From contig NIVC01001255.1 of NCBI GenBank assembly GCA_002269645.1, forward strand, positions 186,001 to 250,000: 64,000 nt of DNA, given 5' to 3'. The position numbers and the translations under genes were made by a program. Within the stretch, counting starts at the first letter, position 1; the number at the start of each line of letters is the position of its first letter. The notes beneath the pieces were generated by a model. That model was not told the DNA's origin and made no database searches. It worked only from the letters and a program-made list of their open reading frames with translations. Below are positions 9,001 through 41,129 of this stretch, one piece after another. This DNA comes from Macrostomum lignano (Eukaryota).

Positions 9001-9065
9001 TTTCTTATAGGATAGATATACTATCCTACTGCCAGTAGCAAGCAGGCACAAGACATCGCACCCAC

Positions 9066-9287
9066 CCGATCCTCCGGTTCTCGGGCGAATCGCTCGAAGC
9101 CCTCCTTCTCCATCTGCATGATCTCGATGAGGTCCAGCTCGGCCTGGTATTCGTCCCCCAGTTCGGTGCCGTAGCGCACGGCCGTCTCCTCGTTGTAGAC
9201 TTCGCCAGCGTAAATGCAAATGAAAGCGCCTTTGGGAATGTCGTGCAGAGTGCGGATGCCCCAGCCTTTGCGGGCGGTGCGAAATAC
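9066..9287 (-). CDS. SETDB1: SETDB1 exon: N-terminal SET half
   Basis: cctcag|VFRTARKGWGIRTLHDIPKGAFICIYAG...GDEYQAELDLIE...KEGFE...EDR|gtgggt; 222 nt, phase 0/0. Confidence 0.93.
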
Positions 9288-9379
9288 CTGAGGCGAAATA
9301 AATTCATATTGTTTGCAAACAATACTTATTATTATAAAGCATGAATAAGATCGGAACGTTTCTAGGTAATGAATCAAAG

Positions 9380-10210: not shown

Positions 10211-10248
10211 AAGTCAGTCAAGAAGAACAAACCCAAACAGCAACTCAC

Positions 10249-10644
10249 CTGCAGCCGATTGCGCAATCCGTGCTGCACAACCCGATTGCGGCAGGTGGCC
10301 GCCCGGCACCGGCACTTGGCATTGCACTCGTAGATGCCGCCAAGCGCCCTGGCCATGTGCCGGCCGTGACGATAAGTGACTCGAATATCAGCTTTGCCAG
10401 TGATCGCCTGCGACGATCGAATAGTGAGCTGCTGACAGGCGCAACGACGCCTATCCGAGCAGTCGTCTGTGCAGTCGCAGCAGACCAGGAAGCCCGGCTC
10501 GGATTCGTTAGTGTTAACGCCCTGAGTAGGGACTCGCTCGGCCGCGTATTCAATGTAGGGCAGGCTGGTGTTGTCCAGGCTGTTCACCGCGCTGACTGGC
10601 ACGGGCTCTTTGCCGTAGCTGATGTCCTTCAGCTGGTAGATTAT
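10249..10644 (-). CDS. SETDB1: SETDB1 exon: pre-SET
   Basis: tcgcag|IIYQLKDISYGKEPVPVSAVN...CCDCTDDCSDRRRCACQQLT...GIYECNAKCRC...CRNRVVQHGLRNRLQ|gtgagt; 396 nt, phase 0/0. Confidence 0.93.
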
Positions 10645-10709
10645 CTGCGAATTTAAAGGTGGGGCGACTAATTAGGTACCGAGGATACTGTCAATTAATG
10701 GAGGGCCCT

Positions 10710-11045
10710 ATAAGTAGCTACTTTATTGGCCCTAAAATAGCTACTCTGTTGGCCCTAAAAACAGCTACTTAATCGGCCCTATAAACAGCTACTTAATCAG
10801 CCCTATAAACAGCTACTTAATTGGCCCTATAAATAGCCTCTTAATTGGCCCTATAAACAGCTACTTAATTGGCCCTATAAATAGCTACTTAATCAGCCCT
10901 ATAAACAGCTACTTAATTGGCCCTATAAATAGCCTCTTAATTGGCCCCATAAACAGCTACTTTATTGGCCCCATAAACAGCTACTAAATTGGCCCTATAA
11001 ACAGCTACTTTATTGGCCCTATAAACAGCTACTTAATTGGCACTA
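10710..11045. repeat. 24-bp intronic minisatellite
   Basis: ggccctataaacagctacttaatt units. Confidence 0.92.
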
Positions 11046-11084
11046 AGTGGGCCTTCAGAAGGAACCACAATAGAGTCAACCAAC

Positions 11085-11259
11085 CTTGAGCGGCTGGAAT
11101 TCGTTGTTAATCCGAACGGCGGCATCGAAGCAAAAGGCGGACACGTGCAGCCGGCAGCAGGTCTCTCTCAGGTAGGCGTCCAAATCGGCGTGGCTGCGCA
11201 AGCTTCGGCCGCAGGGGGCCCGGTACTCCACCACTTCGCGGCCGCGCCCGGCCGGCCCT

Positions 11260-11290
<31 letters not shown>

Positions 11291-11828
11291 CAACTCCGCC
11301 GTCGTCATCGGCGGCCAGCACCAGCAGTCGCCACCAGCCAAGCGCTACGGGCGCCTCCAACGGATTCCGACCCCTAGCAGCGGCGTCATCGAAGGCAACA
11401 GCGCTGGACAGGCCGCCGGCAGGGTCCGGGCAGCAGCTGGGCGAGCAGCGATGCGGCCGGTACAGCCTCGGCTGCGGGCACGGCGACTCGGGATCGAATG
11501 TGGCCACCTGACGGCCTCTGTAGGCCGCGTCCTGGGCTACGCTGTCGTCGTCGGAGTCGCCGTTGTCACGTCGACGGCGACGCCGGCCAGTCGAACCGAT
11601 GTACACAAAATCATCATCGTCCTCGGCAGCGTTGGCCGTCGATTTTGACGAGGCCAATCGACTGGCGGATGTGGACTTCCTAGCGTGGCCGACTCGAGCT
11701 TGCGAGGCCACAACCGCTGCAGACACCTGCACTTGGACTGGCTTCTGCTTTGGCTGCTGCTGTTGCTGCTTTGGCGGCCCGTACAACCTGTCGTAGAGCG
11801 TCTTGAGCCGCGTGCTGCCGCGGTACAC
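11085..11828 (-). CDS. SETDB1: SETDB1 exon: end of Tudor 3, linker, MBD
   Basis: ttgaag|VYRGSTRLKTLY (SETDB1 WIYRGSTRL motif)...RGRNPLEAPVALGWWR...EYRAPCGRSLRSHADLDAYL...FCFD|gttggt; 744 nt, phase 0/0. Confidence 0.9.
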
Positions 11829-11919
11829 CTTCAAGTTAATGGATGATTGGGCGGCCCTGGTGAGCTGTAGAGCTGCGTCAGAGAAGAGTAACAAAGGACA
11901 GTAAAGGTGATTTGAAGAG

Positions 11920-13100
11920 TGAAAAAATGACAGGAAGGGGAATTTGAGGAGTGACAAGATAGAGAGGATCTGAGGAGTGACAAGATAGACAGGAAGGAGA
12001 TCTGAGGAGTGACAAGATAGACAGGAAGGAGATCTGAGGAGTGACAAGATAGAGAGGATCTGAGGAGTGACAAGATAGACAGAAAGGAGATCTGAGGAGT
12101 GACAAGACCGACAGGAAGGAGATCTGAGGAGTGACAAGACCGACACGAAGGAAATCTGAGGAGTGACAAGATAGAGAGGATCTGAGGAGTGACAAGACCG
12201 ACACGAAGGAAATCTGAGGAGTGACAAGATAGAGAGGATCTGAGGAGTGACAAGACCGACACGAAGGAAATCTGAGGAGTGACAAGATAGAGAGGATCTG
12301 AGGAGTGACAAGACCGACACGAAGGAAATCTGAGGAGTGACAAGATAGAGAGGATCTGAGGAGTGACAAGACCGACAGGAAGGAGATCTGAGGAGTGACA
12401 AGACCGACAGGAAGGAGATCTGAGAAGTGACAAGACCGACAGGAAGGAGATCTGAGGAGTGACAAGACCGACACGAAGGAAATCTGAGGAGTGACAAGAT
12501 AGAGAGGATCTGAGGAGTGACAAGATAGAGAGGATCTGAGGAGTGACAAGACCGACAGGAAGGAGATCTGAGGAGTGACAAGACCGACACGAAGGAAATC
12601 TGAGGAGTGACAAGATAGAGAGGATCTGAGGAGTGACAAGACCGACACGAAGGAAATCTGAGGAGTGACAAGATAGAGAGGATCTGAGGAGTGACAAGAC
12701 CGACAGGAAGGTGATCTGAGGAGTGACAAGACCGACACGAAGGAAATCTGAGGAGTGACAAGATAGAGAGGATCTGAGGAGTGACAAGACCGACACGAAG
12801 GAAATCTGAGGAGTGACAAGATAGAGAGGATCTGAGGAGTGACAAGACCGACAGGAAGGAGATCTGAGGAGTGACAAGACCGACAGGAAGGAGATCTGAG
12901 GAGTGACAAGACCGACAGGAAGGAGATCTGAGGAGTGACAAGACCGACAGGAAGGAGATCTGAGGAGTGACAAGATAGAGAGGATCTGAGGAGTGACAAG
13001 ACCGACAGGAAGGAGATCTGAGGAGTGACAAGACCGACAGGAAGGAGATCTGAGGAGTGACAAGACCGACAGGAAGGTGATCCGAAGAGTGACAAGACGG
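11920..13100. repeat. Composite 27/31-bp intronic minisatellite
   Basis: tctgaggagtgacaaga followed by variable spacers. Confidence 0.95.
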
Positions 13101-13113
13101 AGCGGCAACTCAC

Positions 13114-13765
13114 CCACTCGCACGAGCCGTCGTGCATGAATGTCAGCCGAATGAGGGCGCCGTCGACGGCTTCAACGCGAGCGTTGTGCCAGCCGCCGCG
13201 CAGCTCGGCGACAACGGCCTGCCCGGGCTGCAGACGGAGCAGATCCCGAGTGGGATAGGCGTCCAAGTAGTCGCGAATAAAAAAGCGACTCTCCGGCCCA
13301 GCCAGCCGCCAATTGTTGACGCTCTGAGCCAGGACTCGGTGCACCGCGGCCTGCTCAGAGTACTGACAGTAGCCATCGTCGAAGAATATTAGATAACGAA
13401 ATTTATTAGCCTCGCCGGGCGATTCGGCTACGATGCCGGCGTATCGAGGCGTCTCGTCGCCGTCGGCCTCGGCGTCGGGACCTTCGTCGGCGTAGTCGGG
13501 ATCTGCGACGGTCGATACCACGCGAGTGCCGACCGGGCAGCGCTCCTGACGGGTTAGACAGGAGTCGCCAAGGGCCATCTGGACTGGTTGAACGGTGCGG
13601 CTGAGCTGCGGCTGAGGCTGCGTTGGCTGCTGGTTGGCGGCCAGCGTCGGGGCGCCGAGGAATCGAACAACGTAGGCGTCGCGCGGCAGCTCGTGGGTAA
13701 CGACGGCGCGGCACCATTCGTCTTGGTCGCGCAGGGCGAACACTGATTCGCCGACGTGAACTTTG
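13114..13765 (-). CDS. SETDB1: SETDB1 exon: triple Tudor domain
   Basis: ttccgcag|C KVHVGESVFALR...PVGTRVV...YAGIVAESPGEANKFRYLIFFDDGYCQY...ARVEAVDGALIRLTF...CEW|gtgagt; phase 2/0, consistent with neighbouring exons. Confidence 0.92.
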
Positions 13766-18650: not shown

Positions 18651-19030
18651 GAACTTTAGAGTTCCAAATAGCTCCCGCTATGCCTAAAACCGACCACTTT
18701 AGCATTTGGGGATCTCTATGCGGAGAAATGGGATAACTGGAGATTTAATGTGCACAGAAACCTTCCTGAGTTTAATATTTTTTATTGTTTTTTTCAGGAG
18801 CCTCTAGTATACAGCCATTTATGAAACATTGTACTAAAACTTAACGTAAGAGATAACATAATGGGGCCATAAAATAACATTACTATCGTTACTATTTTCA
18901 TACAAACATAAAAAGAGCGTTGTTCATCATGGTCATCTCGTCATTTAAGCATTTGAAGCTCCAAATGAAGACATTGGCGTAAAGAAATCGGGACCCAATG
19001 CTTCGGGCTCCATTTTGCCTCTTAAGTTCT

Positions 19031-19125
19031 TTGTGTCCTTCAGCAAGACACTTAACTCTGCATTGCTTCAGTTCACCCAGCTGTATAAAATGGGTGCCAG
19101 CATTAGCTGGGGTAGTTAATGGTGA
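19031..19125 (+). mobile_element. SINE central-domain fragment
   Basis: tgtgtccttcagcaagacacttaactc...cagttcacccagctgtataaaatgggtgccagc; CORE-like and homologous to 19991-20080. Confidence 0.65.
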
Positions 19126-19915: not shown

Positions 19916-20223
19916 CATAGCTTAGTGGTTAGACCGTCGAACTCACGACTTGAAGGTCAGGGGTTTGATTCTCGATCCCGCTGGAACAATTTGTGTCCTA
20001 GAGCAATACACTTAACTCTATTGTACATTGCTTCAGTTCACCCAGCTGTAAAATGGGTGCCAGCATTAGCTGGGGTAATTGAGGGACTGAGGGTGTGGCA
20101 ACCTCATACCCCAGTCCTTGGACTGAACAGCCGTACGCAGCCTTCAGATGCGCCGGGCAGTAGATGTCGGCTGCACAACTGGCCCAATTGGGGCAGGTGT
20201 AATCAATTATATCATTATTATTA
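19916..20223 (+). mobile_element. tRNA-derived SINE with CORE-like central domain
   Basis: A box tagcttagtgg, degenerate B box ggtttgattc, CORE-like gtgtcc...cacttaac...ctgtaaaatggg, and an (ATT)n-like tail. Confidence 0.7.
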
Positions 20224-22181
20224 AGCAGAATAAATCGCGGTTACAAATACGGACCCTTTCAGTTCTGTTTCTGTCAACCTTGTGCTTTCAGTTTAGCAAG
20301 CGTTCGTCTCACCCCCTTTTCCAGTCCTCTCCGCTCTTCCTGCGTTTCCGCGAGCTTCTGATTAAGTTCCCGCTTGAACCTCTGACATATCAGAGTCTGC
20401 TCAGAAGCTAACACCACCCTCTAACCTCCCCGTTGGATCTGCTGACTCGGTCGTTTTTTTGTTGCTTCTGACTGAAGCCTGAAGGAACTACAACCTAAGA
20501 TTTTAGATTGGAGCCACCTCACCTACCGGACGTTAAGTTAGCCGGCGTACGAGAAGTACAGTAATAAAAGTAATGTTGATGGCAAGACAGGTTCGCAAAA
20601 CTTCGGATCATCTAAGCCAGTTAATCCCTTTACGCCCCCAGCACACATACAACCCAAGCTACGGCTGTTACACAGCTTGCAGAGCATTAAAGAAACCATC
20701 AAATCGACATATCGGGAATCATAATTGAGCGCGTAAAACTGGAAGTTCGTCGATTCTTTTTTTCTAATTCTTTGGAATTCGAAGCACAGCAGATTAACGC
20801 TAAATTGTGCTGGCCCAGTCAACTAGGCACTTTGCGTAACACTGTACTACGATAAGAAATTCGAGGCCCACAAACACTCCTGTGCGTAGGTTTATGCTCG
20901 GGATTCGGCAAAATGACCATTCTTAATTGCCTCCTCGATGGCTGCGCGCCGACAGTCGCCTTGATTTGCCGCAGTTCTCAAACCACCACTCCACAACTAA
21001 TAAGGTCTATTATGCGATACGGTCGTAGAATATATTAAAGTAAAAGTCCAAATGGGATGAAATAACGGGTGAATGAAGCTGATTTACGATCTGATCTACA
21101 ATAGTTTCTTTCGCGACATATAAGCTCTTAAGCAATCTCAGTCAAGCATCAATAGGTCAGATTCCTCAACTGCTAGTTAGCTTCATCATCTATCTAGCAA
21201 CCGGAAATGACGCACTGTCTCCCTTCTATACGATAATGACAAGTAGAAAGTATGCAGAAAAATATTACGGTTCTCAGTCATGAAAATCTCCAATATTCAC
21301 AAGAAAGCCCATTCCAGATTTTGCAATCAGGCACGCTCTTAGCTGTGCGCAAGAGCTCTCTGATAGAGTAATAATTCTACGCAAAGCCTTGTAAGTCCAG
21401 CAATTAACAGATTGACATCTCGTTCACTGCAGAGCCAGATCTGGCCGAACACAAGATAACTAGATGTGGTTGCACTCAACTACAAATAGAAAAAGCCTTC
21501 AAAGTGCGAGTCTGCACCAGACTCTACTACATCTTCTAGCTGTACCCACAGTCAACAGCTGATATAAATCACAATCGCAAAATTTATTAATTAGCAATAA
21601 AAGCTTAACTAAAAAGAGGGAGCTGAAAAAATGCTGAATAACAAAATTCTAGATAGCCAAGTGCACGTGATCAACCCATTCTTTATTACTAAGCGGACCT
21701 AACTAAAAATAGCATTTGAATAGAAAGGACCTTCCTTTTTCACGGTCAGCTTTCTGTATGAGTTCAGCAGGTGCAAGCACGAAGATGCTTGGACATAGAG
21801 AAAAGAGACAGTCTTATTCTAAAAATTCTTAGTCTAACTTCTACTTTTTCAAGTCGACAGAATAGGAAAAAATGTCAAACATCAAAAGACAGACGACGCC
21901 GAACGACTGTACTTGCGAGATAAAGATGAAGGAGAAAGATTTCCTGCTATCAATGGGGCTTCTGATCTGAGGGCTCACCGACCGGACAGGCCTAGCTATA
22001 TGCGGATGGTAAAATGGAAAATAGAATGACAGAAGAAGGATGTGAGAGAAAAGCCAGGGGGGAAGACCTATAAGCGACCAGACGCCAGATTCCAATAGGG
22101 ATTACTGGGCGCCAAGCTAAGCTGGCAGGGGGTGCGGGCGATATGAGGAGATGGGAAAGGACTGGGGCGAAACCCGGTCAG

Positions 22182-22225
22182 CCAATAGACGTGTGTGGGA
22201 GACCAGTAAGCCCAAGAGTATAAAA
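22182..22225 (+). promoter_or_regulatory. Possible CCAAT box and TATA box of the GPCR gene
   Basis: CCAAT at 22182 and TATAAAA at 22219, about 120 nt upstream of the ATG; motif match only. Confidence 0.3.
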
Positions 22226-22339
22226 TATGCAACATAAGCGGCTGCTATCGCGAAATCAAACACTAAAATGTGATTGGAAAAAGTCCAATATCAAGAACTA
22301 GGAATTCTAGACTTGACTACATATTTTTATTCAACAGAA

Positions 22340-23869
22340 ATGAACAACGATAGTAATAATAATAGCCAATGGACAAGGCCTCGGGACATGATAGTGGACA
22401 CGGCCGCGTTAACGGGCATCGCACTAATCGGCGTATTCGGCAACGCATTAATCATCATGTGCGTCATCGTTCACAAGAAGCTAAAGAATGTCACATCGCT
22501 ATTCGTAGCCAATTTGGCCGGAGCGGACCTGTTATTAGCTGGCTTAGTAACGCCCGGCTCAATGCGCCTGCTGTGGCGTCAGCGCGGCCTGCCATTTAGC
22601 CCGCTGTGCCAGCTATTCGGCGCGGCGCTCTACTTCAGCTGCGCCGCTGTGGTAAATTTTAGCGCACTGATAGCGCTAACTCGCTATATAGTAATCTGCA
22701 AGCCGCACCTCGTTGTTGGCCTATTTAGGCACAAACGAGCCGCTTGCTGGTGCATCGCATTATGGAGCTACACTGTACTGCAGGTAGTAGCGCCTTCGGC
22801 TGGTCAGTTATTCCAGTACGCCTACAATCCGGCTATCGAGGTGTGCCATTTGAACTATACGAAACACCCGGTGGCAATAGCCATATACATCAACTGTTTC
22901 TGCTTTCTGCCCTGTTTGACTGCCTGCATTGTTTGCTACGCGCTAATATTCTACGCTTTGCGTCGGAACAGGCGAAAGCTGACTAGGCACATGTCGTCAA
23001 CAATGAGCGCAAAATTTCTTGCCAAGAAGTTGACTAGAGAGCGTCGAGCAACTCTGCCACTTTTTGTATCGTTATTGTCATTCTTTGTACACTGGCTACC
23101 CGTGATGATCATGTTCGGCTTGGATCCAAACTTTGAAAAATACAATCCGCAGATCTACCGCTATTTAGGCGTGTTTAGCATAGCCAGCGCCTGCGACAAT
23201 TGGATAATCTACGGCCTGTTGAATAAGAACTTTGCCAACGGCTATAAATCTGTATTAAGCTACTGCTGCTGCTGTCAGTCTAGCAACGATGGCGGCCCAA
23301 CAGCGCCGCAAGAGTCGATCAAAATGCGCCGAGCACCTGGTAGAGGCGGCGGACGTCGGCAGTCTAGTAGCGGACGGGTGCACTGTCAGCACCTGTCGGC
23401 TGGCAGTTTGCTGCGCAACAGTCAGCGATTGCAGCAGCATCGCTACAGGCAGAGCAACATTGCTACCGTAGCTGTGGCAAACGCTGCTCCGCTAGTAAGC
23501 GAATTAGAAGACTACAGCGACTTGGAGAGCTGGAACAGCGGCGGTAGGCGGTTTCCAGTTCAACTGCTAGAAGCCTGCCACGCCTGTAACCGAGAAGACA
23601 ACTATGGAAATCAAGTGTCAATTAATGAGAACATGGCGAATCACGATTACAAGGACGACGAGGACGACTACGAAAGCGAAACGGACGATATTGATCGAAT
23701 CAATGAGAAGTGCTGCGGCGCAAGGCACCGAGCTGAGGCTCTGCAGCAGCAGCAGCAACAAAGACTATCATCTGGCGACCAGACGAATACACCAACGCGT
23801 CAATCGCTTGTTGTTGTCCTGGCGGTGCGAGACGGCTGCGACAATGACGGGAAAATTGCCCAGCTGTGA
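22340..23869 (+). CDS. Intronless class A GPCR, melatonin-receptor-like
   Basis: Seven hydrophobic segments; GN in TM1, FVANLAGADL, TRYIVIC, HWLP, CDNWIIYGLLNKNFANGY (compare melatonin receptor NAIIYGLLNQNFRKEY). True ATG likely 22340 (MNNDS), with an N-glycosylation site nearby. Confidence 0.88.
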   Translation: MNNDSNNNSQWTRPRDMIVDTAALTGIALIGVFGNALIIMCVIVHKKLKNVTSLFVANLAGADLLLAGLVTPGSMRLLWRQRGLPFSPLCQLFGAALYFSCAAVVNFSALIALTRYIVICKPHLVVGLFRHKRAACWCIALWSYTVLQVVAPSAGQLFQYAYNPAIEVCHLNYTKHPVAIAIYINCFCFLPCLTACIVCYALIFYALRRNRRKLTRHMSSTMSAKFLAKKLTRERRATLPLFVSLLSFFVHWLPVMIMFGLDPNFEKYNPQIYRYLGVFSIASACDNWIIYGLLNKNFANGYKSVLSYCCCCQSSNDGGPTAPQESIKMRRAPGRGGGRRQSSSGRVHCQHLSAGSLLRNSQRLQQHRYRQSNIATVAVANAAPLVSELEDYSDLESWNSGGRRFPVQLLEACHACNREDNYGNQVSINENMANHDYKDDEDDYESETDDIDRINEKCCGARHRAEALQQQQQQRLSSGDQTNTPTRQSLVVVLAVRDGCDNDGKIAQL

Positions 23870-25683
23870 CGCTTTTTACCATTCTATTCATATATAGCTT
23901 CTTAAGTCGATGATTAATCTTTCTCCTCGATTGAAAAGGCTTCTGTCCCCATCAAAATCAAAACATGGAAAGCAATAAGTAAACACGCGTTGCCGATTCC
24001 CTTTTTTATGCTTAAGCCAATAGGCTTAACAGGCGACTGACCCTCCAGTCTAGACCGATTCCACTCGTCTTCACCAGCTAAGAACTATGCTGCTGGTCCT
24101 GCAGAGCGGCACTTTGCACCGTTACCTCGGAATGCGTGCAGACAGTGGCGGTCAGAACACTTTAAAAAGGACAGGACAGACCGGGAACGGCGGTTCTAGG
24201 CAAATAAGATCGGTTCAAGAAAGCCAGCCAGACTGAGATTAGAGCCTACACACTGAAAGGGACCGCGAGGAACAGGCGCTACGCTGCAGCGTTCAGCTTC
24301 ATCAACCCCTCTTTCTTTCTCGCTGCCCCCTCACGCCTGTCTCCTACAGATACGGCGTCATTCGAACCCAAGCCTCAGAACACAGTTCCCCTCCTAGAAG
24401 CAGATACAGAACGCCCTAATCAATTCAGCGAAATGTGTTATCCTCCCACTCTACCGCGAGTGCCCAATTTTAGCTTAACTGAACTGGACCTACCTGTGAG
24501 TCAAGCAGTTATGCACCTTCGGCTACAATAAGATTGTAAAACCTTTACCAAATTTTGTTTCTCTTCTGCACTCCGATTTGCAATATTGATTTCTTTATGT
24601 TGCTTTACAATCATTTGTCATAATGAAATATATGAAATTTACCTCAGTGCACTCAGTCAATATTACAAAGCAATCATACCATACAGCTTTTTTTTTAATG
24701 TCAATTACCTGTAAATACTAGAAGAAAAAGATAAATGGGAATAAAATAAAGCATGACAGTTCGCATACTACAATAAAAACATGCACACTTTCATACTTAT
24801 TATTAGAATTTAAACATAGCATAAATAGCCAGGCCCAACATTCTAAAAACTTTTTATCTCAACAATGCTACTAAAAGTAGCAATAGAAGCTAGTAATACA
24901 TACTTTTGCTTGAATATGAATGCAATTTAGACAGTAAGATAGCAGTAAGATGTAGTGTCATATTGAAAATAAGTATATTAAACTTGCCTTTTCAAATTAC
25001 TAAGATCTTTTAATAATAAGATAATGCAAAATAGCAACAATGTTTCTGCTAGCTGCAGTATATAGACAAAATTCTAATAGACTCTCTAATATTAGAATTC
25101 TAATATTAAAATTCTAATAGACTCATAACTGTTAATTTGCCATAGGCATTTTAGCTATCCTGTTCACTATATAAGTATAAATACAAGTTCAACTTGCAGC
25201 TTTGGCCCTTCACCTCTTTTTTGCCCTACTAATCAATTACAATAAACTTGCTTCTATTAGTTAATTGTCAACTTCAACAAATTGGTAACAGAGCATTAGC
25301 ATTACCATGGTCATTATGCAATCAATAACTGACCTATCTAGTGACCAGATCTAGTAGTCCCAGAATGACCATAGCACATACTCTGCTAAAATAGCCATTG
25401 CCACAGAGTAGTCGCATATTGAAGCTAGTGACCCACCACTAGCTGCTTTAGCAACTACGATATCTTCTCTTTTTGCTGCTTATTCCATAACTACGATCCT
25501 TGCAGCAGCTCCCACTACCTCTGTTGACATCAATGCCTCCTGACCACAATGACTGCCATGATACAACAAAACCAACTGCTCATACAATAGCTTGATGCTA
25601 ATGCTCATCTTGCCCCAACATCAACATCATTGTCTATTACTAGCAACTGCAATCTAATTGCTCTCATCTGCTTTATTGTTCTT

Positions 25684-26205
25684 TCAAAGGTTTATCTTCC
25701 AACATTCAATGGTATAGACCTAGCTACATTCCCTAGATTCTAGGAGACATTCTTTCACCATGTCAACAGCATTGCAGTCAATAACATTGATAAGTTTGAG
25801 GCATTCCACAGTCTTCTCTCTGGCTTGGCACTAGAAGCTTGGCACCCTTGATGCTTGCTAGCCCAATGCCTATGCAGAAGCCTGCTGCATCCTCCTGGGC
25901 AAATATATTGATGCCCAAGAGCAGAAAAAATGCCATTCTAGTGCATTTTTGCTCTCCATTGCAGCTCCACCTCCAACCTAGATAAGCTCAATAATTTTAC
26001 CAACACCCTTTGTCTCATTACCAGCTAGCTATTCTGCCTAAGTGAGCTTGTTTGCACCATGGACAGCCACATCTATGCACTTTGGAACTGCCTCCTGCTC
26101 AAGTACTAGACCAAAATCTGGAATATCCACATTGCCAATGGGCTGCCCCTTATGTTTACCATGGCCTAGCTCCAAGGCCACCTCGACTGCAAGCTGAAGA
26201 TGCTC
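25684..26205 (+). pseudogene. BEL/Pao LTR-retrotransposon gag (DUF1759-like) relic
   Basis: SKVYLPTFNGIDLATFPRF*ETFFHHVNSIAVNNIDKFEAFHSLLSGLALEA / NAYAEACCILLGKY matches the LPxFxG..W..FW..F...KF..L.SLL.G.A...NY.EA...L...Y pattern; two frameshifts and TAG stops. Confidence 0.7.
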
Positions 26206-28943
26206 AAAGCCACTTTCTTTTAAACTGATTTAAATGAACTACACAAGATAAATTGAACTATGAAATTGAAACTTTGAAGTTGCTTAATTCTATCACTCTT
26301 TTGAGCCTTAGTTTGACAATATATAGTTTTCTAAGTTCTAAGTTATTTTTTAATGTTAAAAAGGTCTAAAAAACCTACTTTAATCATTTTATAATATCAT
26401 ATCATATTGTAACTATTTTATTTCAAATGAAAATATAATTTAGCAAACAAAAGAGGAAAATTACTTGCCTATTTGACTATCAAAAGAATTAGATATAAGC
26501 TAGCTAATTACTAGAGCTAGAGTACAACTAAACCAATATTAGCCAAACAAACAAGCCTTTAGCTTTAGAATAGACTTAATTAGTATCATATAAATAGACC
26601 TTTTAATCAAATTTAACTAAAATTTGACAAACAATTAACCTAAAAAATAGGGTAATTTGTTAATCTTTAGAAATTTCAAGACATTTAAAATAGAATTTCG
26701 AATTACATTTTGTTCATATTTCTGTTGTTAGTAAGTAAGCTACTAAGACCACTCAATGAGTAACTTTTCCAAACTTTTAAACTATAATAAAGAATTAAGA
26801 CTAGACCTATACCATAGAAAACTCTAATATATACAAGGGATTCCTAATGCACTTAGCACATAATCAAAGTATAAGTAGATATTGAACAAAGGCCATAGTC
26901 TAGAAGAAGGCATATTTACCAAAAATTTCCAAGGTACACTCAAGAAATTAGGTATATATGTTGACATACAAAAATTGATTTTAGGCTTTTGGTATATACA
27001 TTTAATATTTTGGTATGATATACACCAAAAATAAAAAATAATTTTATTAATAACATTAATAGTCACAATAATCATCTATGCATTGTAATTGTAAAATTTG
27101 ATAACTATATAACACAAAACTAAGAAATCATCTAGTTTTGTATATTTAATTATATTTTGAAAAATAGTGACTTTGTTAGTTACCACAAGTAAATATTTGA
27201 ACTTTTCCAGGTGTAAAATTTAGTAGTGATATGGCAGACATCAATGTCTATGTTTACTAGGCCTAGTTTGAGATGGCTAAATGCTATCTATGGTGAAAAC
27301 CTGCAATTGCTCCCTGTTTTTTTAAATGGACTAAGATGGGAAGGACTGGGATTCTAATGAATATCTTGCTTGGCTTGCTTTCCTAAACAATCTTGATTGT
27401 CACTCTTGATTGTGATTGTTAAAATTTTTAGATTTTAACTTTATCTATCTAAGTCTAACTGAAGTTTTTAAATTATAAAAATCACTGACATTAGTACTAG
27501 GCCTAAAATAGTAGTACCGTTATAAAACTGACAATTTGAAGCTTTGCATAATATAATATATTTGGCATACATTGGAATACAGAAAAAATGTCTTTTTGTG
27601 GGGTACATTTATAGACTAGGGCCAAAGGTCCCTAATACATAGGCCTAGGCCTATGATATACAACTGCAAATTGTTATAGGCCAAAAACAATTTATTCCAA
27701 ATCAAAACTGCCTTTTTCTAATATTCAATTCCAATAGAATGTTTCAAAGAATGGGTCACACAAGGACCACAGTAGTAGGGTTGGTAGTATAAATCCTATT
27801 TTTTTGCCTTCTTAACATTATTCATGATAACTTATATGATGACTATGAGTATGATGTAGTCATAAAAATACAATATATCTAATAGCTATCATGCACGAGA
27901 GAAAAAAATAGGGCTTATGTCTTATGAAAGACTAGGGCCCAAGGCTTGTAAGCCAATGCAAGTCTAGGATTAGGCCTGCACTGCACAACATTATAAAGCA
28001 TAGGCGAATATGACTAGCCTACTACTCAGAGACTGATCTTGAAAAACAGAAAACTTATGCTTTGCCTTAGTACATAATATTAAAAATACTTCGATTTTAT
28101 AATAGGCCTAATTTTGCCTTCTTTGAACCTTTAATACGCTAGTAGCTAGCAGTAAATAACAATAAGATCATGAACGTCACATCAATGACCGAGGAGTTCG
28201 AATGGTTTTTTAAAAGATCGAGGGTTCCTAGAATATTCTACGAAGTCCGGTTCTCGTTACACACGCTTTAAGCTCAGCCATTGATAACGAATAATCGATA
28301 AAATTAAAGATATGGGATGAAACGCCAGCTTACTTGATCTTTCTGGGCTGAGTTTAGTCTTTTGATGCTGTTTTTGTTGTTTTTGTTGCTGTTGTTATAC
28401 ATGTTGGTGCTGTTGTTGTAAATCGATGCTAACGTGTAGCTATATACCAAGCCATGGCCAGGGTTCTTTAATTTTTTACCATAGACAAGACGAATAATAA
28501 CTTCGACTAAAAAGTTGACAACAGAGAGGCTAAGAGGATACTCAACTCGATGTCGTCATTTATATTGCTGCCATTAACTACAGTTAGTCTGTACGTTAGC
28601 AATCTCAAATATGCTTTGCGCTCTAAATCTAACATCAGGTTTGTAATTTCGTTTCCTCTTTCGACTTTTTATAGCTGTTGAATAGATGAAGTTAAATTAA
28701 TTGCTGCGCAGGTCAAATTGGAAAAGTTTTGATTTGAAGTTTTTGACAGAGTTTTGACAAAAAGCATGAATCTGAGCGCAAAATCAGCGTTGTCAATAGA
28801 AATGCACGGAGTCAGTATACAGCGATCGCACCATCCTTTCTTAGTTTCATCCACTCTTAGTTTCGCAATTGATGCAACTCGAAAGAAACCGCGAACAGTG
28901 GGCGTGTTGGGGACAATGTTAGTGTCTTCATTCGCTTCCTAGT

Positions 28944-29635
28944 CATGGATGAATGAATAGAATGGATTGCTATTCTGGCTCTGGCTATTTTCGTTTTTGA
29001 CTCTTTTGCATCCGGTTCCCCCCCGTGCCTGTTCTCATCGTTACTGGTATCGTATATGTGTGTTGTTTTCCTGTTCCAATTTCACTCAATTTTACCATTC
29101 TAACAGTCTGTGTTGTCATGTACGTTAATAGAATCGTGTACCACAAGTTTTGATGCGTGATGCACACACAAAGGTACTCCCTCGATGATGATGATGGGCG
29201 AAATAGAAGTTACTTGTGTTGAAATAGAACTTTAAAACCAATTTCATAACTCCAATAGTAAAATTCAGATAAAGCATCGCCAGTAATCCATTATTGTAGC
29301 ATTGTCATCGCACCCTCATCATCACCCTCGACATGAAAATCTGAAATCATTACTGTTGTAATTTGCAGGGGATTTGTTATCATTCCTCTGCTTTAATTAA
29401 CAACTTCAATTGACAAACAAGTAACCAGAGAATATCGAGCGCTCGATATTCTCTGCAAGTAACTGACATTCTCAGTTCTTTGCGCTTGTGCATCGAAAGA
29501 AAGGGGCGAAGGCCGAAAATTGTCTATGGCAATCATCAACCAATGAAAAGGCACGGGGGGGAACCGGATGCAAAAGAGTCAAAAACGAAAATAGCCAGAG
29601 CCAGAATAGCAATCCATTCTATTCATTCATCCATG
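28944..29635 (+). mobile_element. Non-autonomous P-superfamily DNA transposon, copy 1
   Basis: TIRs CATGGATGAA...TTCATCCATG; exact 8-bp TSD ttcctagt (28936-28943 and 29636-29643); left TIR truncated at about 87 bp. Confidence 0.88.
29426..29455. mobile_element. 30-bp TIR-only mini-element nested in the P derivative
   Basis: Perfect palindrome cagagaatatcgagcgctcgatattctctg flanked by the 8-bp direct repeat caagtaac. Confidence 0.65.
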
Positions 29636-30334
29636 TTCCTAGTCACTTTTTGATCTGCCATTTCGTCATTTTCAGGGGCTTCTATCGCCCCATTATAATT
29701 CTGCAGTAACTCTCTGGCCATCTCCCTACCAAAGGGTTCTATGGTGAGAATTGAGTAATTTCACCGTCAACAATCATGCCAGTTGAAGTCGAATTCATTT
29801 CGGATTTGGTCACTTTGTCTAAATTTGCGTTAACATTTTTACTCTATTTAATGCAGAAACACATGGTCATTCAGCACCAAAAAACTATATATTAATCTAG
29901 CTAGATTATTTTTGCCATGACTTGCCCCTTTCGGTTGTTCTGCGAACGCGTCCGCGCAAAGTCTAGCTAGACCAAAAAAACTGATTACTACATTTACGTG
30001 AGTTCAAAATCTATCAAACACCCGCATTTAAAGGTACATGTAAAAGTGGAATAGACCACATACGAGGAGCGTTTGATGACGAACTATTTAGTTTTTTTCA
30101 GTTGAATATTGGTCACTTTGTCATACAAGGCATATAAAGCTTCCATCTTCTTGGTCAGTTCGTATTTCAAAATGAAGAACTATAACAGATGACAATTTCT
30201 ATCCAGCAACCAATTGTCTTTTGAAAAACGCTAAAAGCCATTTTAACGCAAAATTTGGCGTCTTTACTGCGAAGAATGAGTGAAATGATCTTTTTCGCCT
30301 CCGGATATCTACCCCATTTAGGCTAAAATTAGGC

Positions 30335-30612
30335 CATAGGTCGGCCATCTCCGGCCCGCAAAGCCTCTCTATTTGGCCCTTGGGTCATTTGAAACTGCAA
30401 AATAGCAATCCAGCCCCATCAAGGTTTGTGTCTCTGAGCTCGACTCTTCTATCTTATCTTCTCTCTCTCTCCTCTTCCCTCTCTCTCTCTCTCTCTCGTC
30501 TCATCTCTCATCTCCTCGTTCCTTTTCCCTTCTATTCTCTCTCTTACCCCCCTCTCATCTGGCCCGAAGCTGGATCTGGCCATTTAGGGGTAAAAAAATT
30601 TGCCGACCCCTG
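30335..30612. mobile_element. hAT (Charlie/MER-like) MITE with a damaged left end
   Basis: Right end tttgccgacccctg (reverse complement CAGGGGTCGGCAAA); left end gtcggccatctccggcccgc; ccatag present at both flanks. Confidence 0.5.
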
Positions 30613-31093
30613 CCATAGACGGTAATAAATATAGCTTTCTGATAAACGTGTATAAGTGCATCTAATTATGTCAATAGACTATGGAACATCACTTTTCATT
30701 GTAACACAAATACAGAATGATAAGACTTCGAATTTGACTATCTACGCTCGTAGAGCTTCAGGCGCGAAGATGTATGTTTGTGTCTGTGTGCTTAGTTAGA
30801 AAGAAGTATCTATCTTAAAAATCATCCGTGCTTTTTCAACGTCTCCATGCAGAAATTACCGTAAAACTGCCGCGTAGAAACAGCAGTACTGAAAGCCCCA
30901 TAATTTGCCCGTCTCTGTCCATAACTTTGATTCATAATTAACTAGCATAGTTTCATCTTGCCTGTAATTATCCGCCTAATTCATCTTTCTGCCCCCGGCT
31001 TCTTCTGTCCATTTTAGCCATTTTTCTTTCTTGTAAAATGCTATATAATAGACATTTATCATATTGACTGGTTGTGTGCATAACTAAATATCA

Positions 31094-32968
<1,875 letters not shown>

Positions 32969-35032: not shown

Positions 35033-35037
35033 GTATT

Positions 35038-35038
<1 letters not shown>

Positions 35039-35087
<49 letters not shown>

Positions 35088-36228
35088 CAGCAGCAGCAGT
35101 ATTAGCAGCAGCAGCAGTATTAGCAGCAGTAGCAGCAGCAGCAGTATTAGTAGCAGTAGCAGCAGCAGCAGTATTAGTAGCAGCAGCAGCAGTAGCAGTA
35201 TTAGTAGCAGTAGCAGCAGCAGCAGTATTAGTAGCAGTAGCAGTAGCAGTAGCAGTAGCAGCAGCAGTAGCAGTAGCAGTAGCAGCAGCAGTAGCAGTAG
35301 CAGCAGCAGTAGCAGTGGCAGTGGCAGTAGCAGTAGCAGTAGCAGCAGCAGTAGCAGTAGCAGTAGCAGCAGCAGTAGCAGTAGCAGTAGCAGCAGCAGT
35401 AGCAGTAGCAGTAGCAGTAGCAGTAGCAGTAGCAGTAGCAGCAGCAGCAGCAGTAGCAGTAGCAGTAGCAGTAGCAGTAGCAGTAGCAGTAGCAGTAGCA
35501 GTAGCAGTAGCAGTAGCAGTAGCAGTAGCAGTAGCAGTAGCAGTAGCAGTAGCAGTAGCAGCAGCAGCAGCAGTAGCAGTAGCAGTAGCAGTAGCAGCAG
35601 CAGTAGCAGTAGCAGTAGCAGTAGCAGTGGCAGTGGCAGTAGCAGTAGCAGTAGCAGTAGCAGTAGCAGTAGCAGCAGCAGTAGCAGTAGCAGCAGCAGC
35701 AGCAGTAGCAGTAGCAGTAGCAGTAGCAGTAGCAGTAGCAGCAGTATCAGCAGCAGTAGCAATAGCAGTGGCAGTAGCAGTAGCAGTAGCAGTGGCAGTA
35801 GCAGTAGCAGCAGCAGTAGCAGTAGCAGTAGCAGTAGCAGTAGCAGTAGCAGTAGCAGTAGCAGTAGCAGTAGCAGTAGCAGTAGCAGTAGCAGTAGCAG
35901 TAGCAGTAGCAGTAGCAGTAGCAGTAGCAGCAGCAGTAGCAGTAGCAGCAGCAGCAGCAGTAGCAGTAGCAGCAGCAGCAGCAGTAGCAGTAGCAGTAGC
36001 AGTAGCAGTAGCAGTAGCAGCAGTATCAGCAGCAGTAGCAATAGCAGTGGCAGTAGCAGTAGCAGTAGCAGTGGCAGTGGCAGTAGCAGTAGCAGTAGCA
36101 GTAGCAGTAGCAGTAGCAGTAGCAGTAGCAGTGGCAGTAGCAGTAGCAGTAGCAGTAGCAGTAGCAGTAGCAGTGGCAGTGGCAGTAGCAGTAGCAGTGG
36201 CAGTAGCAGTAGCAGTAGCAGTGGCAGT
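35039..36228. repeat. (GCA/GTA)n trinucleotide array filling GPCR intron 1
   Basis: agcagc/agtagc runs for about 1.2 kb. Confidence 0.98.
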
Positions 36229-36414
36229 ACAAGAAAAACTGGGACAAGTGTGTTTGCATGTCGGAAAACTGACAGTTACATGTTCTTTTAATATGAGCCA
36301 CGGGCATAAACTCGACGGACTTTAGACTTGCTGCTATTTTAATTAGCACTCACTGTTGCCCATACACCGCATCCGACATCAGCTCAAGGACTGCTCAACC
36401 CGCCTCTCATGCAG

Positions 36415-36708
36415 ATGAGTTTCTTCATCCTACACCTGGCAGCGGCTGACCTAGTGGTCTTGCTTACTCCTGTGGTTGAGCTCGTTAATATCTGGTCTGG
36501 CAGCTGGTACGGCGGCCGGTACCTGTGCAAAATCTACAGGATTCTGTCAACATTCGGCCTGTACCTGTCCTCATTTATTGTGGTTGCCATTGCGGCTGAC
36601 AGGTGCGCGGTGATCACGAGACCGTTCAGCATCGCCACGGCTGGACGGCGAGCGCGGCTTCTGCTGATCGGTTGCGTGCTGACGGCCGTGGCCTGCAGCC
36701 TGCCGCAG
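36415..36708 (+). CDS. Neuropeptide GPCR exon 2 (TM2-TM4)
   Basis: catgcag|MSFFILHLAAADL...W.G...LCK...LYLSSFIVVAIAADRCAVITRP...SLPQ|gtgctg. Confidence 0.88.
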
Positions 36709-36819
36709 GTGCTGGGCAAGGAATTTGAGAGCTGGGAACTCCGGGTGCCAATTGGGTTGCTGGGGTCTACGGAGGCTGGACTAGGAAGCAAGTAGTCATG
36801 CCCATTCCGCTGACCCCAC

Positions 36820-39855: not shown

Positions 39856-40478
39856 CATGGATGAACGAATAGAATGGATTGCTATTCTGGCTCTGGCTAT
39901 TTTCGTTTTTGACTCTTTTGCATCCAGTTCCCCCCCCCGTGCCTTTTCATTGGTTGATGATTGCCATACACAATTTTCGGCCTTCGCCCCTTTCTTTCGA
40001 TGCAGGGGGAAGACCTACAAGCACGATTCGAGAGTCGATTCGTCTACAATAAAATCAGTTCTTTGCGCTTGTTGTTGTTGTTTACTCACTGCTTATTTTA
40101 CTTTTATCACTACCATGCCTAATGGCTCAAAGCGCTACTGTGCTGCACTAGGATGTCTATCCAAGTCAGGGATGCGGGACGACACTGGAGTGAATATCAG
40201 CTTCTTTTCTTTTCCTGTCAAATCTCCACTTCAACTGACCGAATGGATGAGCAATGTGAAGATGGCACCGCAGTTTCTAACAGTCTGTTCTCATCGTTAC
40301 TGGTATCGTATATTCTCAGTTCTTTGCGCTTGTGCATCGAAAGAAAGGGGCGAAGGCCGAAAATTGTCTATGGCAATCATCAACCAATGAAAAGGCACGG
40401 GGGGAACCGGATGCAAAAGAGTCAAAAACGAAAATAGCCAGAGCCAGAATAGCAATCCATTCTATTCATTCATCCATG
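39856..40478 (+). mobile_element. Non-autonomous P-superfamily DNA transposon with THAP remnant, copy 2
   Basis: About 149-bp TIRs; 8-bp TSD ttctgtgg; internal MPNGSKRYCAALGC...FFSFP...W...CSHRY (THAP C2CH pattern, final HF degenerate) from ATG 40115. Confidence 0.9.
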
Positions 40479-41129
40479 TTCTGTGGGCGCATATACTTTG
40501 TAAAACAGCTTTCTACTTTCAGTTCAGTAGCAAAGAGGAATACATAAGCTATTTTATAAGAATAAAGGCAGCTGAAATGACTTTGATAAGTTTAGAAGGC
40601 TAGAAGCCCAAGCTTGCAGGCGTAAACAACTTGCTAATAGGTTCAGCAATAATGTACATTAGCCAGTCCACTGAAATGTACATGGCCGATTTAGGCTGGA
40701 AGTCCGAGAAAGGCAATAAAAATTGCGTGGCGGGTGGGGGTAGTGTGGAAAGGCTCCGTTGGGGGTTTAAGCTGGGGGTAAGAGCCAAAAAATCATTGGC
40801 TTTAAAAATACTTTAAAAAGCTTCTGTTTAATCTACTACTGAACTGTAAGTAGTTTACACGCAAATGTGCTGAGTGGCCCATCTAGTTAGTTATTCTAGT
40901 ATCTGTCTACACCGAAGTTGCTTAATAAGTTTTCTTCATTGGTTTACAACGAAAAATGTTAAGTTAATTGCACATTTAATTTGCAAATTTATTAGAACTG
41001 AGCACCGTGGAACACATACCGGTAGTTACATGATTATACATATAAAACATACTCACAATTTGGCAAAAGGAACGCAACATACAGACAATGACCAGAAAAT
41101 ATGTTATTGACACATGATTTTAGCACCTG

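Follow-up and report, generated by a model that had tools for sequence, protein, structure and literature searches.

A sharply bounded, CpG-void and AT-rich island with a decayed gag-like fragment in Macrostomum lignano: composition consistent with island-restricted methylation decay

Introduction

Vertebrate methylation is genome-wide, and decayed retroelement relics of vertebrates exhibit low CpG observed/expected ratios (o/e), an excess of TpG and CpA and a conversion of arginine CGN codons into codons for cysteine, histidine or stop. Fungal RIP islands, e.g., those of Neurospora and Leptosphaeria, are sharp-edged AT-rich blocks containing stop-riddled transposon remnants, with CpA as the depleted dinucleotide. 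Plant CMT3 is responsible for CHG/CWG methylation and mammalian DNMT3B-type enzymes possess a side activity at CAG; deamination of 5mC in such contexts is expected to lower CAG/CTG and to raise TAG/CTA and TTG/CAA. Among the flatworms, DNMT1 and DNMT3 have been lost in parasitic lineages and in planarians.

Macrostomum lignano keeps both DNMT1 and DNMT3 (PMC11292947, PMC9246332), and its 5mC content is low (PMC11292947, PMC9246332, PMC10658182). Mosaic invertebrate methylomes, e.g., those of Ciona, oysters and annelids, likewise retain DNMT1/DNMT3 and combine CpG-normal with germline-methylated, CpG-depleted compartments (PMC11292947). Here, we describe a CpG-void block in the window, i.e., the whole analyzed stretch of 64,000 nucleotides of M. 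lignano DNA. We propose that it belongs to a class of discrete, sharp-edged, CpG-void, AT-rich macrostomid islands that would have been shaped by dense, island-restricted germline methylation and 5mC deamination, possibly with a weaker component at CWG. This joint reading is derived from base composition, and we assign about half of our credence to it.

Results

CpG content of the island

A sequence-only reading of the window had described positions 24540–28140 as a sharply bounded block with about 12 CG dinucleotides between CG-rich flanks, and the counts agree with it in all these respects. The segment contains exactly 12 CG at a GC content of 32.4% (CpG o/e 0.13), the flanks reach o/e values of 0.95 (20000–24500) and 0.91 (28200–31000), and dense CGs persist until 24520 and resume from 28175. 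At the o/e of the flanks 86 CG would be expected (Poisson P(≤12) = 1.4e-23), and the depletion is far beyond chance. The CG-free stretch noted at 25501–26160 in fact extends over the whole of 25495–26183. CTAG, also stated to be abundant, is indeed over-represented in the block (32 copies vs. 14.8 in simulations closely preserving dinucleotide content, z 5.0). The abundance of TA holds relative to the flanks (o/e 0.73–0.89) but not in absolute terms, the o/e of TpA in the block being 0.97. Features of the block and its neighborhood are compiled in Table 1.

Table 1. Features in and around the CpG-void island (positions refer to the window)
Feature	Position	Strand	Remarks
Rhodopsin-type GPCR gene	22340–23869	+	CpG o/e ~1.05–1.1
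CpG-rich segment, putative exon, adjoining the island on its left side	24351–24502	+	Splice-donor-like CCT|GTGAGT end (24497–24502)
10-bp direct repeat ACAATAAGAT, left copy	24525–24534	+	Brackets island
CpG-void AT-rich island	24535–28158		3,624 bp; 12 CG; CpG o/e 0.13; GC 32%
Left AT-rich non-coding matrix	24535–25299		GC ~29%; no match in six-frame Pfam scan
GC-richer sub-block with decayed gag-like fragment	25300–26211	+	39–56% GC per 100 bp
Reconstructed gag-like reading frame	25681–26211	+	Three segments; six in-frame TAG
Right AT-rich non-coding matrix	26212–28158		GC 21–35%; no match in Pfam scan
10-bp direct repeat ACAATAAGAT, right copy	28159–28168	+	Brackets island
Young repeat fragments, right flank	28944–29638		95–99% identical to 39856–40481; normal CpG

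Equivalent islands in further M. lignano loci

In addition to the window, the sample comprised two M. lignano loci that were fetched (L001 and L002), while an ENA contig was left out because it stems from another organism and has an overall CpG o/e of 0.54. CpG-void AT-rich islands of 2.4–3.6 kb are present in both M. lignano loci, at positions 12650–15008 of L001 (4 CG, GC 28%) and 17663–21220 of L002 (3 CG, GC 31%). Over 131 segments of 500 bp, CpG o/e proved to be bimodal, with a main mode at 0.8–1.1, no segment between 0.3 and 0.4, and 18 of the 131 below 0.3, all of them within the three islands. The latter have CpG o/e values of 0.04–0.13 and make up about 10% of the non-satellite DNA sampled. 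Both observations identify the block as one of a class and not as a contaminant. GpC o/e is 1.61 in the islands vs. 1.52 in GC-matched AT-rich DNA of the host and, as these values match, the islands look native apart from their CpG loss.

Neither blastn nor tblastx revealed similarity among the three islands or matches of the block elsewhere in the window, such that no family alignment could be built. The L001 and L002 islands resemble neither a Gypsy polyprotein nor the gag relic described below, Rfam and tRNA scans yielded nothing, and a search for decayed tandem arrays in the islands with TRF at low threshold gave nothing usable. AGGCCT sites number six in the right matrix of the block, most of them TAGGCCTA-like, and AGACTAGGGCC occurs there twice. 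An origin of the block from a NUMT or a virus was ruled out, there being no coding signal of any kind.

The GPCR encoded to the left of the island is 54% identical to M. lignano BOX15_Mlig009868g1 (E = 2.6e-140), a match that points to a Macrostomum-like flatworm as the host; exact-protein look-ups for this GPCR and for an 83-aa ORF inside the block returned no record. Beyond the GPCR, synteny between the window and L001 is limited to a common SINE-like repeat. A left-edge motif shared by the window and L001, CTGTRAGT..CAAGCAGTTAYG, was considered as an orthologous splice donor and discarded, since random alignments score equally well (P = 0.37). The notion that the islands are introns was dropped because the GTGAGT beside the L002 island opposes a minus-strand gene.

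The gag-like fragment

Within the GC-richer sub-block, CpG o/e is 0.11, and at its right end GC falls from 0.50 via 0.28 to 0.21 across 26100–26300. The gag-like portion is only about 0.5–0.9 kb long and takes up no more than one quarter of the block. Its reading frame, chosen by eye, runs through 25681–25836, continues after a +1 shift at 25838–25981 and, after shifting back, at 25984–26211. All six in-frame stops are TAG (25741, 25859, 25979, 26026, 26107 and 26167) and in-frame TAA or TGA are absent, the + strand of this region containing 11 TAG, 5 TAA and 6 TGA overall; the five peptide motifs named earlier were located at 25732, 25850, 26020, 26101 and 26161. Among the 176 codons of the frame there are nine for cysteine (8 TGC, 1 TGT), one for arginine, seven for histidine (5 CAC), two CAA and one CAG. 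TG and CA attain o/e values of 1.82 and 1.38 at 25501–26160, and the symmetrised TpG/CpA o/e of the gag part is 1.45. The features listed by the sequence-only reading, namely exclusive TAG stops, frequent cysteine, surviving CAA codons and, for the gag part, a signature as expected from decay of CG to TG, were thus all recovered.

Its assignment of the whole block to a BEL/Pao relic did not hold up. With stops written as X, the frame matches Pfam DUF1759 (PF03564) at E = 0.073 and 13.5 bits and, with two TAG stops restored to W/Q, as the top hit at E = 0.0058 and 17.1 bits, both scores lying under the Pfam cut-off of 25.4 bits. The possible link to BEL/Pao is a 73-residue stretch (residues 15–87) that aligns, sub-threshold as stated, in register with profile positions 6–78 of 148, the conserved W being represented by a TAG stop. 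BEL/Pao elements, however, have LTRs, protease, reverse transcriptase, RNase H and integrase. A six-frame Pfam scan of 24400–28300 with E up to 1 found no family and none of these enzymes, and a longer gag reconstruction gave neither a homologue in the protein search nor a Pfam match. The repeat finder detected no direct repeats of at least 16 nt with LTR geometry in the block, and local alignment of its left end with its right part scored 18, compared with a shuffle mean of 17.5. A target-site duplication of 4–6 bp as made by BEL/Pao is absent; the sole flanking repeat has 10 bp and encloses the entire island instead of the gag fragment. The name BEL/Pao relic is an interpretation and not an observation, and it is weakly supported.

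The idea that the mutation is targeted to transposons fared no better. In comparisons with the Gypsy polyprotein and the gag relic, the other two islands revealed no transposon content, and the M. lignano Gypsy family, the only intact one sampled (copies 98–99.8% identical; three proteins found in a search with its ORF), has a GC content of 63.5% and a CpG o/e of 1.01. The CpG richness of this young family implies that active transposons are not natively CpG-poor there; for the same reason a TE-directed process is not supported.

CAG/CWG context and TAG excess

Many k-mers were inspected in 9.5 kb of sequence from the three islands and in matched controls totalling 12 kb, and among them CAG/CTG amounts to 0.81 [0.69–0.92] in the pooled islands vs. 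1.16 [1.04–1.26] in GC-matched controls, TAG/CTA to 1.20 [1.12–1.27] vs. 1.01 [0.93–1.10] and CAA/TTG to 1.18 vs. 1.01, with non-overlapping bootstrap intervals in all three cases. CWG lies under every control in each of the islands. Following CA, G occurs at 0.97 times its overall frequency in islands and at 1.27 times in controls, and following TA at 1.43 and 1.01 times, respectively. A decayed (TAGA)n microsatellite was rejected as the source of TAG, since the excess resides in CTAG, TAGG and TAGC rather than in ATAGA.

In forward simulations, CpG decay combined with context-free C-to-T change produced neither CAG below 1 nor TAG above 1, and both were reached once a modest CWG rate was added. 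The fit stayed poor, the rmsd decreasing from 0.177 to only 0.161, with GpC and CA/TG unreproduced. Mutation of CAG to TAG, as claimed earlier, is backed by low CWG and high TAG/CTA and CAA/TTG in three islands, but the uniformity of the stops carries less weight: in view of GC-rich third positions (CAG:CAA is 56:8 in M. lignano Gypsy), exclusively TAG stops are partly expected under any C-to-T decay. These data suggest that CWG is a second, weaker C-to-T target beside CpG and, as composition rather than substitutions against a family consensus was tabulated, the argument is a compositional one.

Discussion

Proposed island-restricted germline methylation

The CpG loss, the deamination signature of the gag part and the CWG shift are what stands of the sequence-only interpretation; the BEL/Pao block and RIP do not, and the targeting of transposons is unsupported. 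We infer that methylation caused the CpG void. Macrostomum would keep DNMT1 and DNMT3 with little 5mC overall and would focus, or long ago have focused, germline methylation on few small islands, leaving exons, young repeats and the bulk of the remaining DNA unmethylated. Inside the islands, 5mC deamination would have turned about 85–95% of CpG into TpG/CpA, thereby lowering GC. The island of the window would then be an old matrix, AT-rich and non-coding, that harbors a DUF1759-like retroelement gag fragment of about 0.5–0.9 kb, probably GC- and CpG-rich on arrival like the intact Gypsy family sampled. This fragment appears to have decayed in place, arginine CGN becoming cysteine TGC or histidine CAC and stops arising. 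The weaker C-to-T bias at CAG/CTG, if CWG is a true mutational target, would fit a DNMT3-type CAG side activity at intense de novo methylation. In the remainder of the block, TG/CA shows hardly any elevation (1.10 vs. 1.06–1.12 in controls), and CpG loss there would be very old or something other than simple recent decay.

Alternative explanations

The 3.6-kb block may have been inserted whole and already CpG-poor, e.g., as a copy of a methylated island, as a composite non-autonomous element or from a CG (and CHG)-methylating genome, in which case its depletion would be uninformative on events at 24535–28158. Such an insertion would fit the sharp edges, where the CpG transition takes only about 15–50 bp and is, on the right, a pure CpG step (o/e 0.09 to ~1.0) without a GC step (0.34 to 0.36). 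It would also fit the ACAATAAGAT pair, a possible target-site duplication whose copies coincide exactly with the CpG boundaries on either side of the block; no longer exact repeat is shared by the two boundary zones (P ~0.02 by shuffling). We nevertheless consider it unlikely: the block lacks LTRs or other long terminal repeats and, by eye, terminal inverted repeats and a poly-A tail; none of its parts recurs in the 108 kb sampled (window, L001 and L002); the L001 and L002 islands have no flanking repeat equivalent to ACAATAAGAT; GpC and other host-like signatures speak against a foreign donor; and a GC-richer gag sub-block within an AT-rich matrix is unlike a single element.

Improbable, too, is a regional mutational or compositional process without 5mC, be it the regime of old heterochromatic or late-replicating AT-rich DNA or the action of an AID/APOBEC-like DNA deaminase. 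CC/GG (1.21 vs. 0.80), AG/CT (1.19 vs. 1.01) and TpA (0.97 vs. 0.83) differ between islands and controls, shifts that simple methylation-decay simulations reproduce incompletely. The loss is nonetheless highly specific for CpG, GpC being unchanged, and TC/GA and CC contexts are undepleted, contrary to APOBEC-type editing. With an AT skew of about 0, the gag part bears no strand-asymmetric mark of G-to-A change, and both DNMT1 and DNMT3 have been reported from the genus.

The sequence-only reading had also entertained a RIP-like process, i.e., repeat-induced mutation of CpA to TpA in a duplicated transposon in the fungal style. An AT-rich, sharp-edged island with a transposon relic full of nonsense codons and a TpA/ApT ratio of 1.04 for the block recall such a process, but it is rejected because CpA/TpG is undepleted (o/e 1.12–1.45), CpG being the depleted dinucleotide. 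RIP leaves a substrate index, (CpA+TpG)/(ApC+GpT), of at most 1.03, whereas the block reaches 1.41 and its gag part 2.13. The composite index lies below zero, TAA shows no enrichment (0.82), and a duplicate partner was absent from the window, L001 and L002, a small sample of the genome. RIP is accordingly very improbable. An assembly chimera or contaminant, derived, e.g., from food or from a plant-like organism, would account for a composition sharply unlike both flanks and for joint CG and CWG depletion as is typical of plants, yet is scarcely credible given equivalent islands inside M. lignano contigs of 150 and 323 kb from a separately produced assembly, GpC o/e and general composition matching AT-rich host DNA, a DUF1759/BEL-Pao gag that we take to be an animal element, and host sequence on both sides within the window.

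Implications

Island-restricted germline methylation predicts that, in a flatworm lineage keeping its DNMTs, methylation is concentrated in discrete islands of 2–4 kb that coincide with neither gene bodies nor young transposons. As the islands are nearly free of CpG, their methylation would explain the "low" global 5mC reported; were they unmethylated, some different CpG-specific mutational process would be required. A genuine CWG footprint would, to our knowledge, be the first evidence of non-CG methylation shaping germline mutation in an invertebrate. Our most far-reaching suggestion, a non-canonical macrostomid methylation that acts at CG and CWG on small intergenic islands of old AT-rich DNA and transposon relics, spares gene bodies and young transposons and leaves a plant-like footprint, is tentative and, taken as a whole, rather doubtful.

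Comparison with known systems

With fungal RIP islands the block shares its sharp edges, its AT richness and a stop-riddled transposon remnant, but differs in the dinucleotide depleted, the substrate index and the lack of a duplicate partner among the sequences sampled. The footprint expected of plant CMT3 and DNMT3B-type CAG activity is present in all its components, although CWG depletion is mild and compositional here, in contrast to near-complete CpG loss. The gag fragment agrees with decayed vertebrate retroelements in CpG o/e (about 0.1 here), TpG/CpA excess and the fate of its arginine codons. In contrast to vertebrates with their genome-wide methylation, flanks and young transposon copies keep CpG o/e near 1, such that the decay is confined to the island, with no demonstrated tie to TE identity. 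The bimodal CpG distribution is reminiscent of mosaic invertebrate methylomes. These, however, deplete the bodies of broadly expressed genes, whereas in Macrostomum the exons adjoining islands are CpG-rich (o/e ~1.0–1.1), and the depleted part consists of AT-rich intergenic islands of 2.4–3.6 kb with near-total CpG loss.

Extent and edges of the CpG-void block

Direct counting between 24540 and 28140 yielded 12 CG dinucleotides (observed/expected ratio, o/e, 0.13; GC 32.4%) and none at all between 25495 and 26183, just as the sequence-only reading had it with about 12 for the block and none in 25501-26160. At the ratio of the flanks (CpG o/e 0.95 for 20000-24500 on the left and 0.91 for 28200-31000 on the right) 86 CG would be expected in the block (Poisson P(<=12) = 1.4e-23). 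CG is dense up to 24520 and again from 28175. At the right edge, GC content merely moves from 0.34 to 0.36 while CpG o/e rises from 0.09 to about 1.0, so that the discontinuity there is CpG-specific. CTAG, also described as abundant, occurs 32 times compared with 14.8 in simulations closely keeping dinucleotide content (about twofold, z 5.0), whereas the same description does not hold for TA, as TpA o/e of 0.97 lies above the flanks yet constitutes no excess.

A 10-bp direct repeat, ACAATAAGAT, brackets the block, its two copies (24525-24534 and 28159-28168) coinciding exactly with the points where CpG content changes (shuffling P about 0.02). The repeat may be a target-site duplication created by the island as a unit; terminal structures that would account for it are missing. 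A splice-donor-like 20/22-nt motif, CTGTRAGT(AG)CAAGCAGTTAYG, is present at the left edge of the block and near the left edge of the island in comparison locus L001, with TG in the window where L001 has CG; this match is statistically indistinguishable from chance.

Equivalent islands at other loci

An equivalent island was found in both Macrostomum lignano loci fetched for comparison. The three islands have no alignable sequence in common, and the two additional ones nevertheless exhibit the dinucleotide signature of the block together with recurrent TAGGCC/AGGCCT-type motifs. CpG o/e is bimodal over 131 windows of 500 bp (tandem arrays excluded), with a main mode of 0.8-1.1, no window at 0.3-0.4 and 18 windows below 0.3, all of which lie inside the three islands. 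GpC o/e amounts to 1.61-1.69 in the islands, and a high value is a host trait because AT-rich, CpG-normal host DNA of matched GC content has 1.52. Host-like GpC and the recurrence of such islands on two other M. lignano contigs rule out an assembly contaminant and render a foreign donor unlikely. The L002 island contains decayed minisatellites with zero CpG left and a divergence too high for TRF, which suggests that the islands derive from old host sequence and not from a foreign source. Length alone does not make an intron CpG-poor in this genome, since a gene which, by eye, we take to be SETDB1-like has introns filled with CpG-normal minisatellites. The most fitting description of the block is that of a CpG-void island, of a kind that recurs in macrostomid genomes, with a small, decayed gag-like fragment inside.

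Features of the window and of comparison loci L001 (NIVC01001279.1, 204475-225842) and L002 (NIVC01002686.1, 62311-85085); positions are those of the window unless a locus is named
Feature	Position	Properties
Left AT-rich matrix of block	24535-25299	GC about 29%
GC-richer sub-block	25300-26211	GC 39-56% per 100 bp
Right AT-rich matrix of block	26212-28158	begins after GC drop from 0.50 to 0.21 within 200 bp
L001 island	L001 12650-15008	2.36 kb; 4 CG; GC 28%; downstream of GPCR homologue
L002 island	L002 17663-21220	3.56 kb; 3 CG; GC 31%; upstream of minus-strand SH2-domain gene
Decayed minisatellites in L002 island	L002 18560-18790, 19975-20480	units about 15-16 bp (ATTTTGCC...) and about 40 bp (GGGGAATTGCTAAGATGTCAAG...)
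Splice-donor-like motif	24493-24514; L001 12984-13007	
Presumed SETDB1-like gene	9021-13743, minus strand	Tudor-like N-terminus, pre-SET cysteine cluster, SET motif; intron minisatellite units 26-90 bp
SINE-like repeat	19010-19124, 19917-20223; L001 385-696	79-90% identity; conserved core, translated ...KWVPALAGV...
GPCR gene	22340-23869	ends 670 bp left of block
Young repeat	39856-40481; fragments 28944-29057, 29468-29638	95-99% identity between copies
(ATCT)n microsatellite	31095-32966	1.9 kb
(TAGCAG)n array	35037-36229	1.2 kb; 577-aa ORF of Ala/Val repeats reads through
Second GPCR-like exon	36409-36795	adjoins ORF of (TAGCAG)n array
Satellite	48352-62182	13.8 kb; 17-bp unit GTGTCAGGAGAGTATGG, about 814 copies, 90% matches; GpC almost nil; very long spurious ORFs
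Gypsy-type elements	L002 5709-13969; L001 17909-20039	very young; two tandem copies in L002; intact 1327-aa gag-pol ORF included; internal deletion in L001 fuses gag-protease with integrase C-terminus

The GPCR gene next to the block has a single strong relative among 5.8 billion proteins, likewise from M. lignano (54% identity, E = 2.6e-140).

Anatomy of the block and identity of the gag-like fragment

The block is three-part and not one transposon. The proposal of a 3.6-kb BEL/Pao relic could not be upheld: neither LTRs nor other long terminal repeats were found in the block, terminal inverted repeats were not apparent by eye, a six-frame scan of the block returned no Pfam domain, and a coding appearance is confined to the middle part. 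There, the five peptide motifs listed in the sequence-only reading were all recovered in place, and a frame picked by eye, with two frameshifts, comprises 176 codons with six in-frame stops, all TAG, along with 9 Cys (8 TGC), 1 Arg and 7 His. Over residues 15-87, the frame can be aligned in register with DUF1759, the BEL/Pao gag domain (profile positions 6-78), at E = 0.073; with W and Q in place of the TAGs, DUF1759 becomes the top match at E = 0.0058, and neither score reaches the Pfam cut-off of 25.4 bits. A protein database search gave no homologue of the relic. Judged from its sequence, the fragment is probably a decayed retroelement gag, while its affiliation with BEL/Pao is unproven.

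One could imagine that the whole block was inserted as a piece already depleted in CpG, as its sharp edges and the repeat flanking both boundaries would fit; such an origin appears improbable in view of the internal heterogeneity of the block, its host-like signature and the lack of further copies in the window, L001 and L002.

CpG decay and the question of transposon targeting

The gag part carries a textbook CpG-decay signature. Symmetrised TpG/CpA reaches 1.45 there (for 25501-26160, TG 1.82 and CA 1.38), at a CpG o/e of 0.11; Arg is nearly absent, and TGC-Cys and CAC-His, both codons being products of CGC, are common. For comparison, the ORF of the young M. lignano Gypsy family contains 9% Arg, three quarters of it CGN-encoded. 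The suggested CG-to-TG decay with replacement of Arg by Cys is supported by composition in this part. The AT-rich matrix has hardly any TpG/CpA excess (1.10 vs. 1.06-1.12 in comparison sequence), so that CpG loss there is either old or not simple recent decay.

The Gypsy family was the one intact transposon family sampled, and its copies (98-99.8% identical, GC 63.5%) are CpG-rich with an o/e of 1.01. CpG is at a normal level, too, in young repeats of the window's right flank. Active elements in these genomes are thus not natively CpG-poor, which speaks for a gag fragment that decayed once it lay in the island. It does not follow that transposon identity was the trigger, and the idea of a transposon-targeted process gained no support: the L001 and L002 islands are similar neither to the Gypsy polyprotein nor to the gag relic. 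The repeat at 39856-40481 has an ORF with a Cys-rich N-terminus, for which no Pfam family was found, between inverted terminal segments some 150-170 bp long.

A candidate CWG component

The exclusive occurrence of TAG among the stops, previously read as CAG-to-TAG hypermutation, is weaker evidence than it appears. In the Gypsy-type ORF with its GC-rich third positions, CAG exceeds CAA 7:1, and with such codon usage any C-to-T process gives mostly TAG stops: context-free transitions on the Gypsy codon table lead to an estimated 59% or so of TAG, and six out of six has P about 0.04. Support independent of stop codons is provided by composition. Relative to a first-order Markov expectation on both strands, CAG/CTG (CWG) stands at 0.77, 0.96 and 0.77 in the islands vs. 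1.02-1.32 in seven controls, TAG/CTA at 1.30, 1.18 and 1.10 vs. 0.86-1.16, and CAA/TTG at 1.18, 1.01 and 1.31 vs. 0.80-1.05. Against GC-matched controls (12 kb of AT-rich DNA; bootstrap intervals), the pooled islands show non-overlapping intervals both for CWG (0.81 [0.69-0.92] vs. 1.16 [1.04-1.26]) and for TAG/CTA (1.20 [1.12-1.27] vs. 1.01 [0.93-1.10]). In controls, G is in excess after CA and CT (1.27 and 1.29 times its frequency) and not after TA or TT, whereas in islands this preference is reversed (0.97 and 0.91 after CA and CT, 1.43 and 1.32 after TA and TT), which is what C-to-T change at CWG would produce. (TAGA)n-like contexts were dismissed as a source, as the TAG excess sits in CTAG, TAGG and TAGC.

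Forward simulation from control sequence with CpG decay and context-free C-to-T change resulted in CAG of about 1.04-1.07 and TAG of about 1.0, while a CWG rate of 1-2x background led to 0.61-0.77 and 1.11-1.17, respectively; the overall fit barely improved with this term (rmsd 0.177 to 0.161), and GpC and CA/TG were not reproduced. We regard the CWG component as a real lead, albeit not an established one and with the chances somewhat against it.

A mutational regime operating without 5-methylcytosine (5mC) would agree with the deviation of several non-CpG statistics, e.g., CC/GG at 1.21 vs. 0.80 in matched controls, and we rate it no higher than arrival of a depleted piece. Repeat-induced point mutation (RIP), likewise considered in the earlier reading as a CpA-to-TpA process, requires a substrate index (CpA+TpG)/(ApC+GpT) of at most 1.03 and is rejected by values of 1.41 for the block and 2.13 for the gag part, by the lack of TAA enrichment in the islands and by the lack of a duplicate partner of the block in the window, L001 and L002. 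Taken together, the observation itself was confirmed and its interpretation supported in part.

Proposed mechanism and comparison with known systems

DNMT3-type enzymes are known to methylate CAG as a side activity. From composition we infer that dense methylation by retained DNMT3 and DNMT1 may be, or for long may have been, confined to discrete 2-4-kb islands that make up a small part of the germline genome, while exons, young repeats and most intergenic DNA would be unmethylated. Deamination of 5mC would have removed CpG from the islands and made them poorer in GC, and any content, here a retroelement gag fragment, would decay along with the island; where de novo methylation is intense, methylation of CAG at a low level could come on top and leave a weaker CWG footprint. 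With less than 1% of the sampled CpGs lying in islands, a "low" global 5mC, such as has been reported, would be expected. According to reviews and a 2024 paper, M. lignano differs from planarians and parasitic flatworms in keeping DNMT1 and DNMT3, and its 5mC is low (PMC11292947, PMC9246332, PMC10658182). Decay driven by methylation is familiar as such; new, if true, would be an island-restricted pattern that spares gene bodies and young transposons, possibly with a CWG component.
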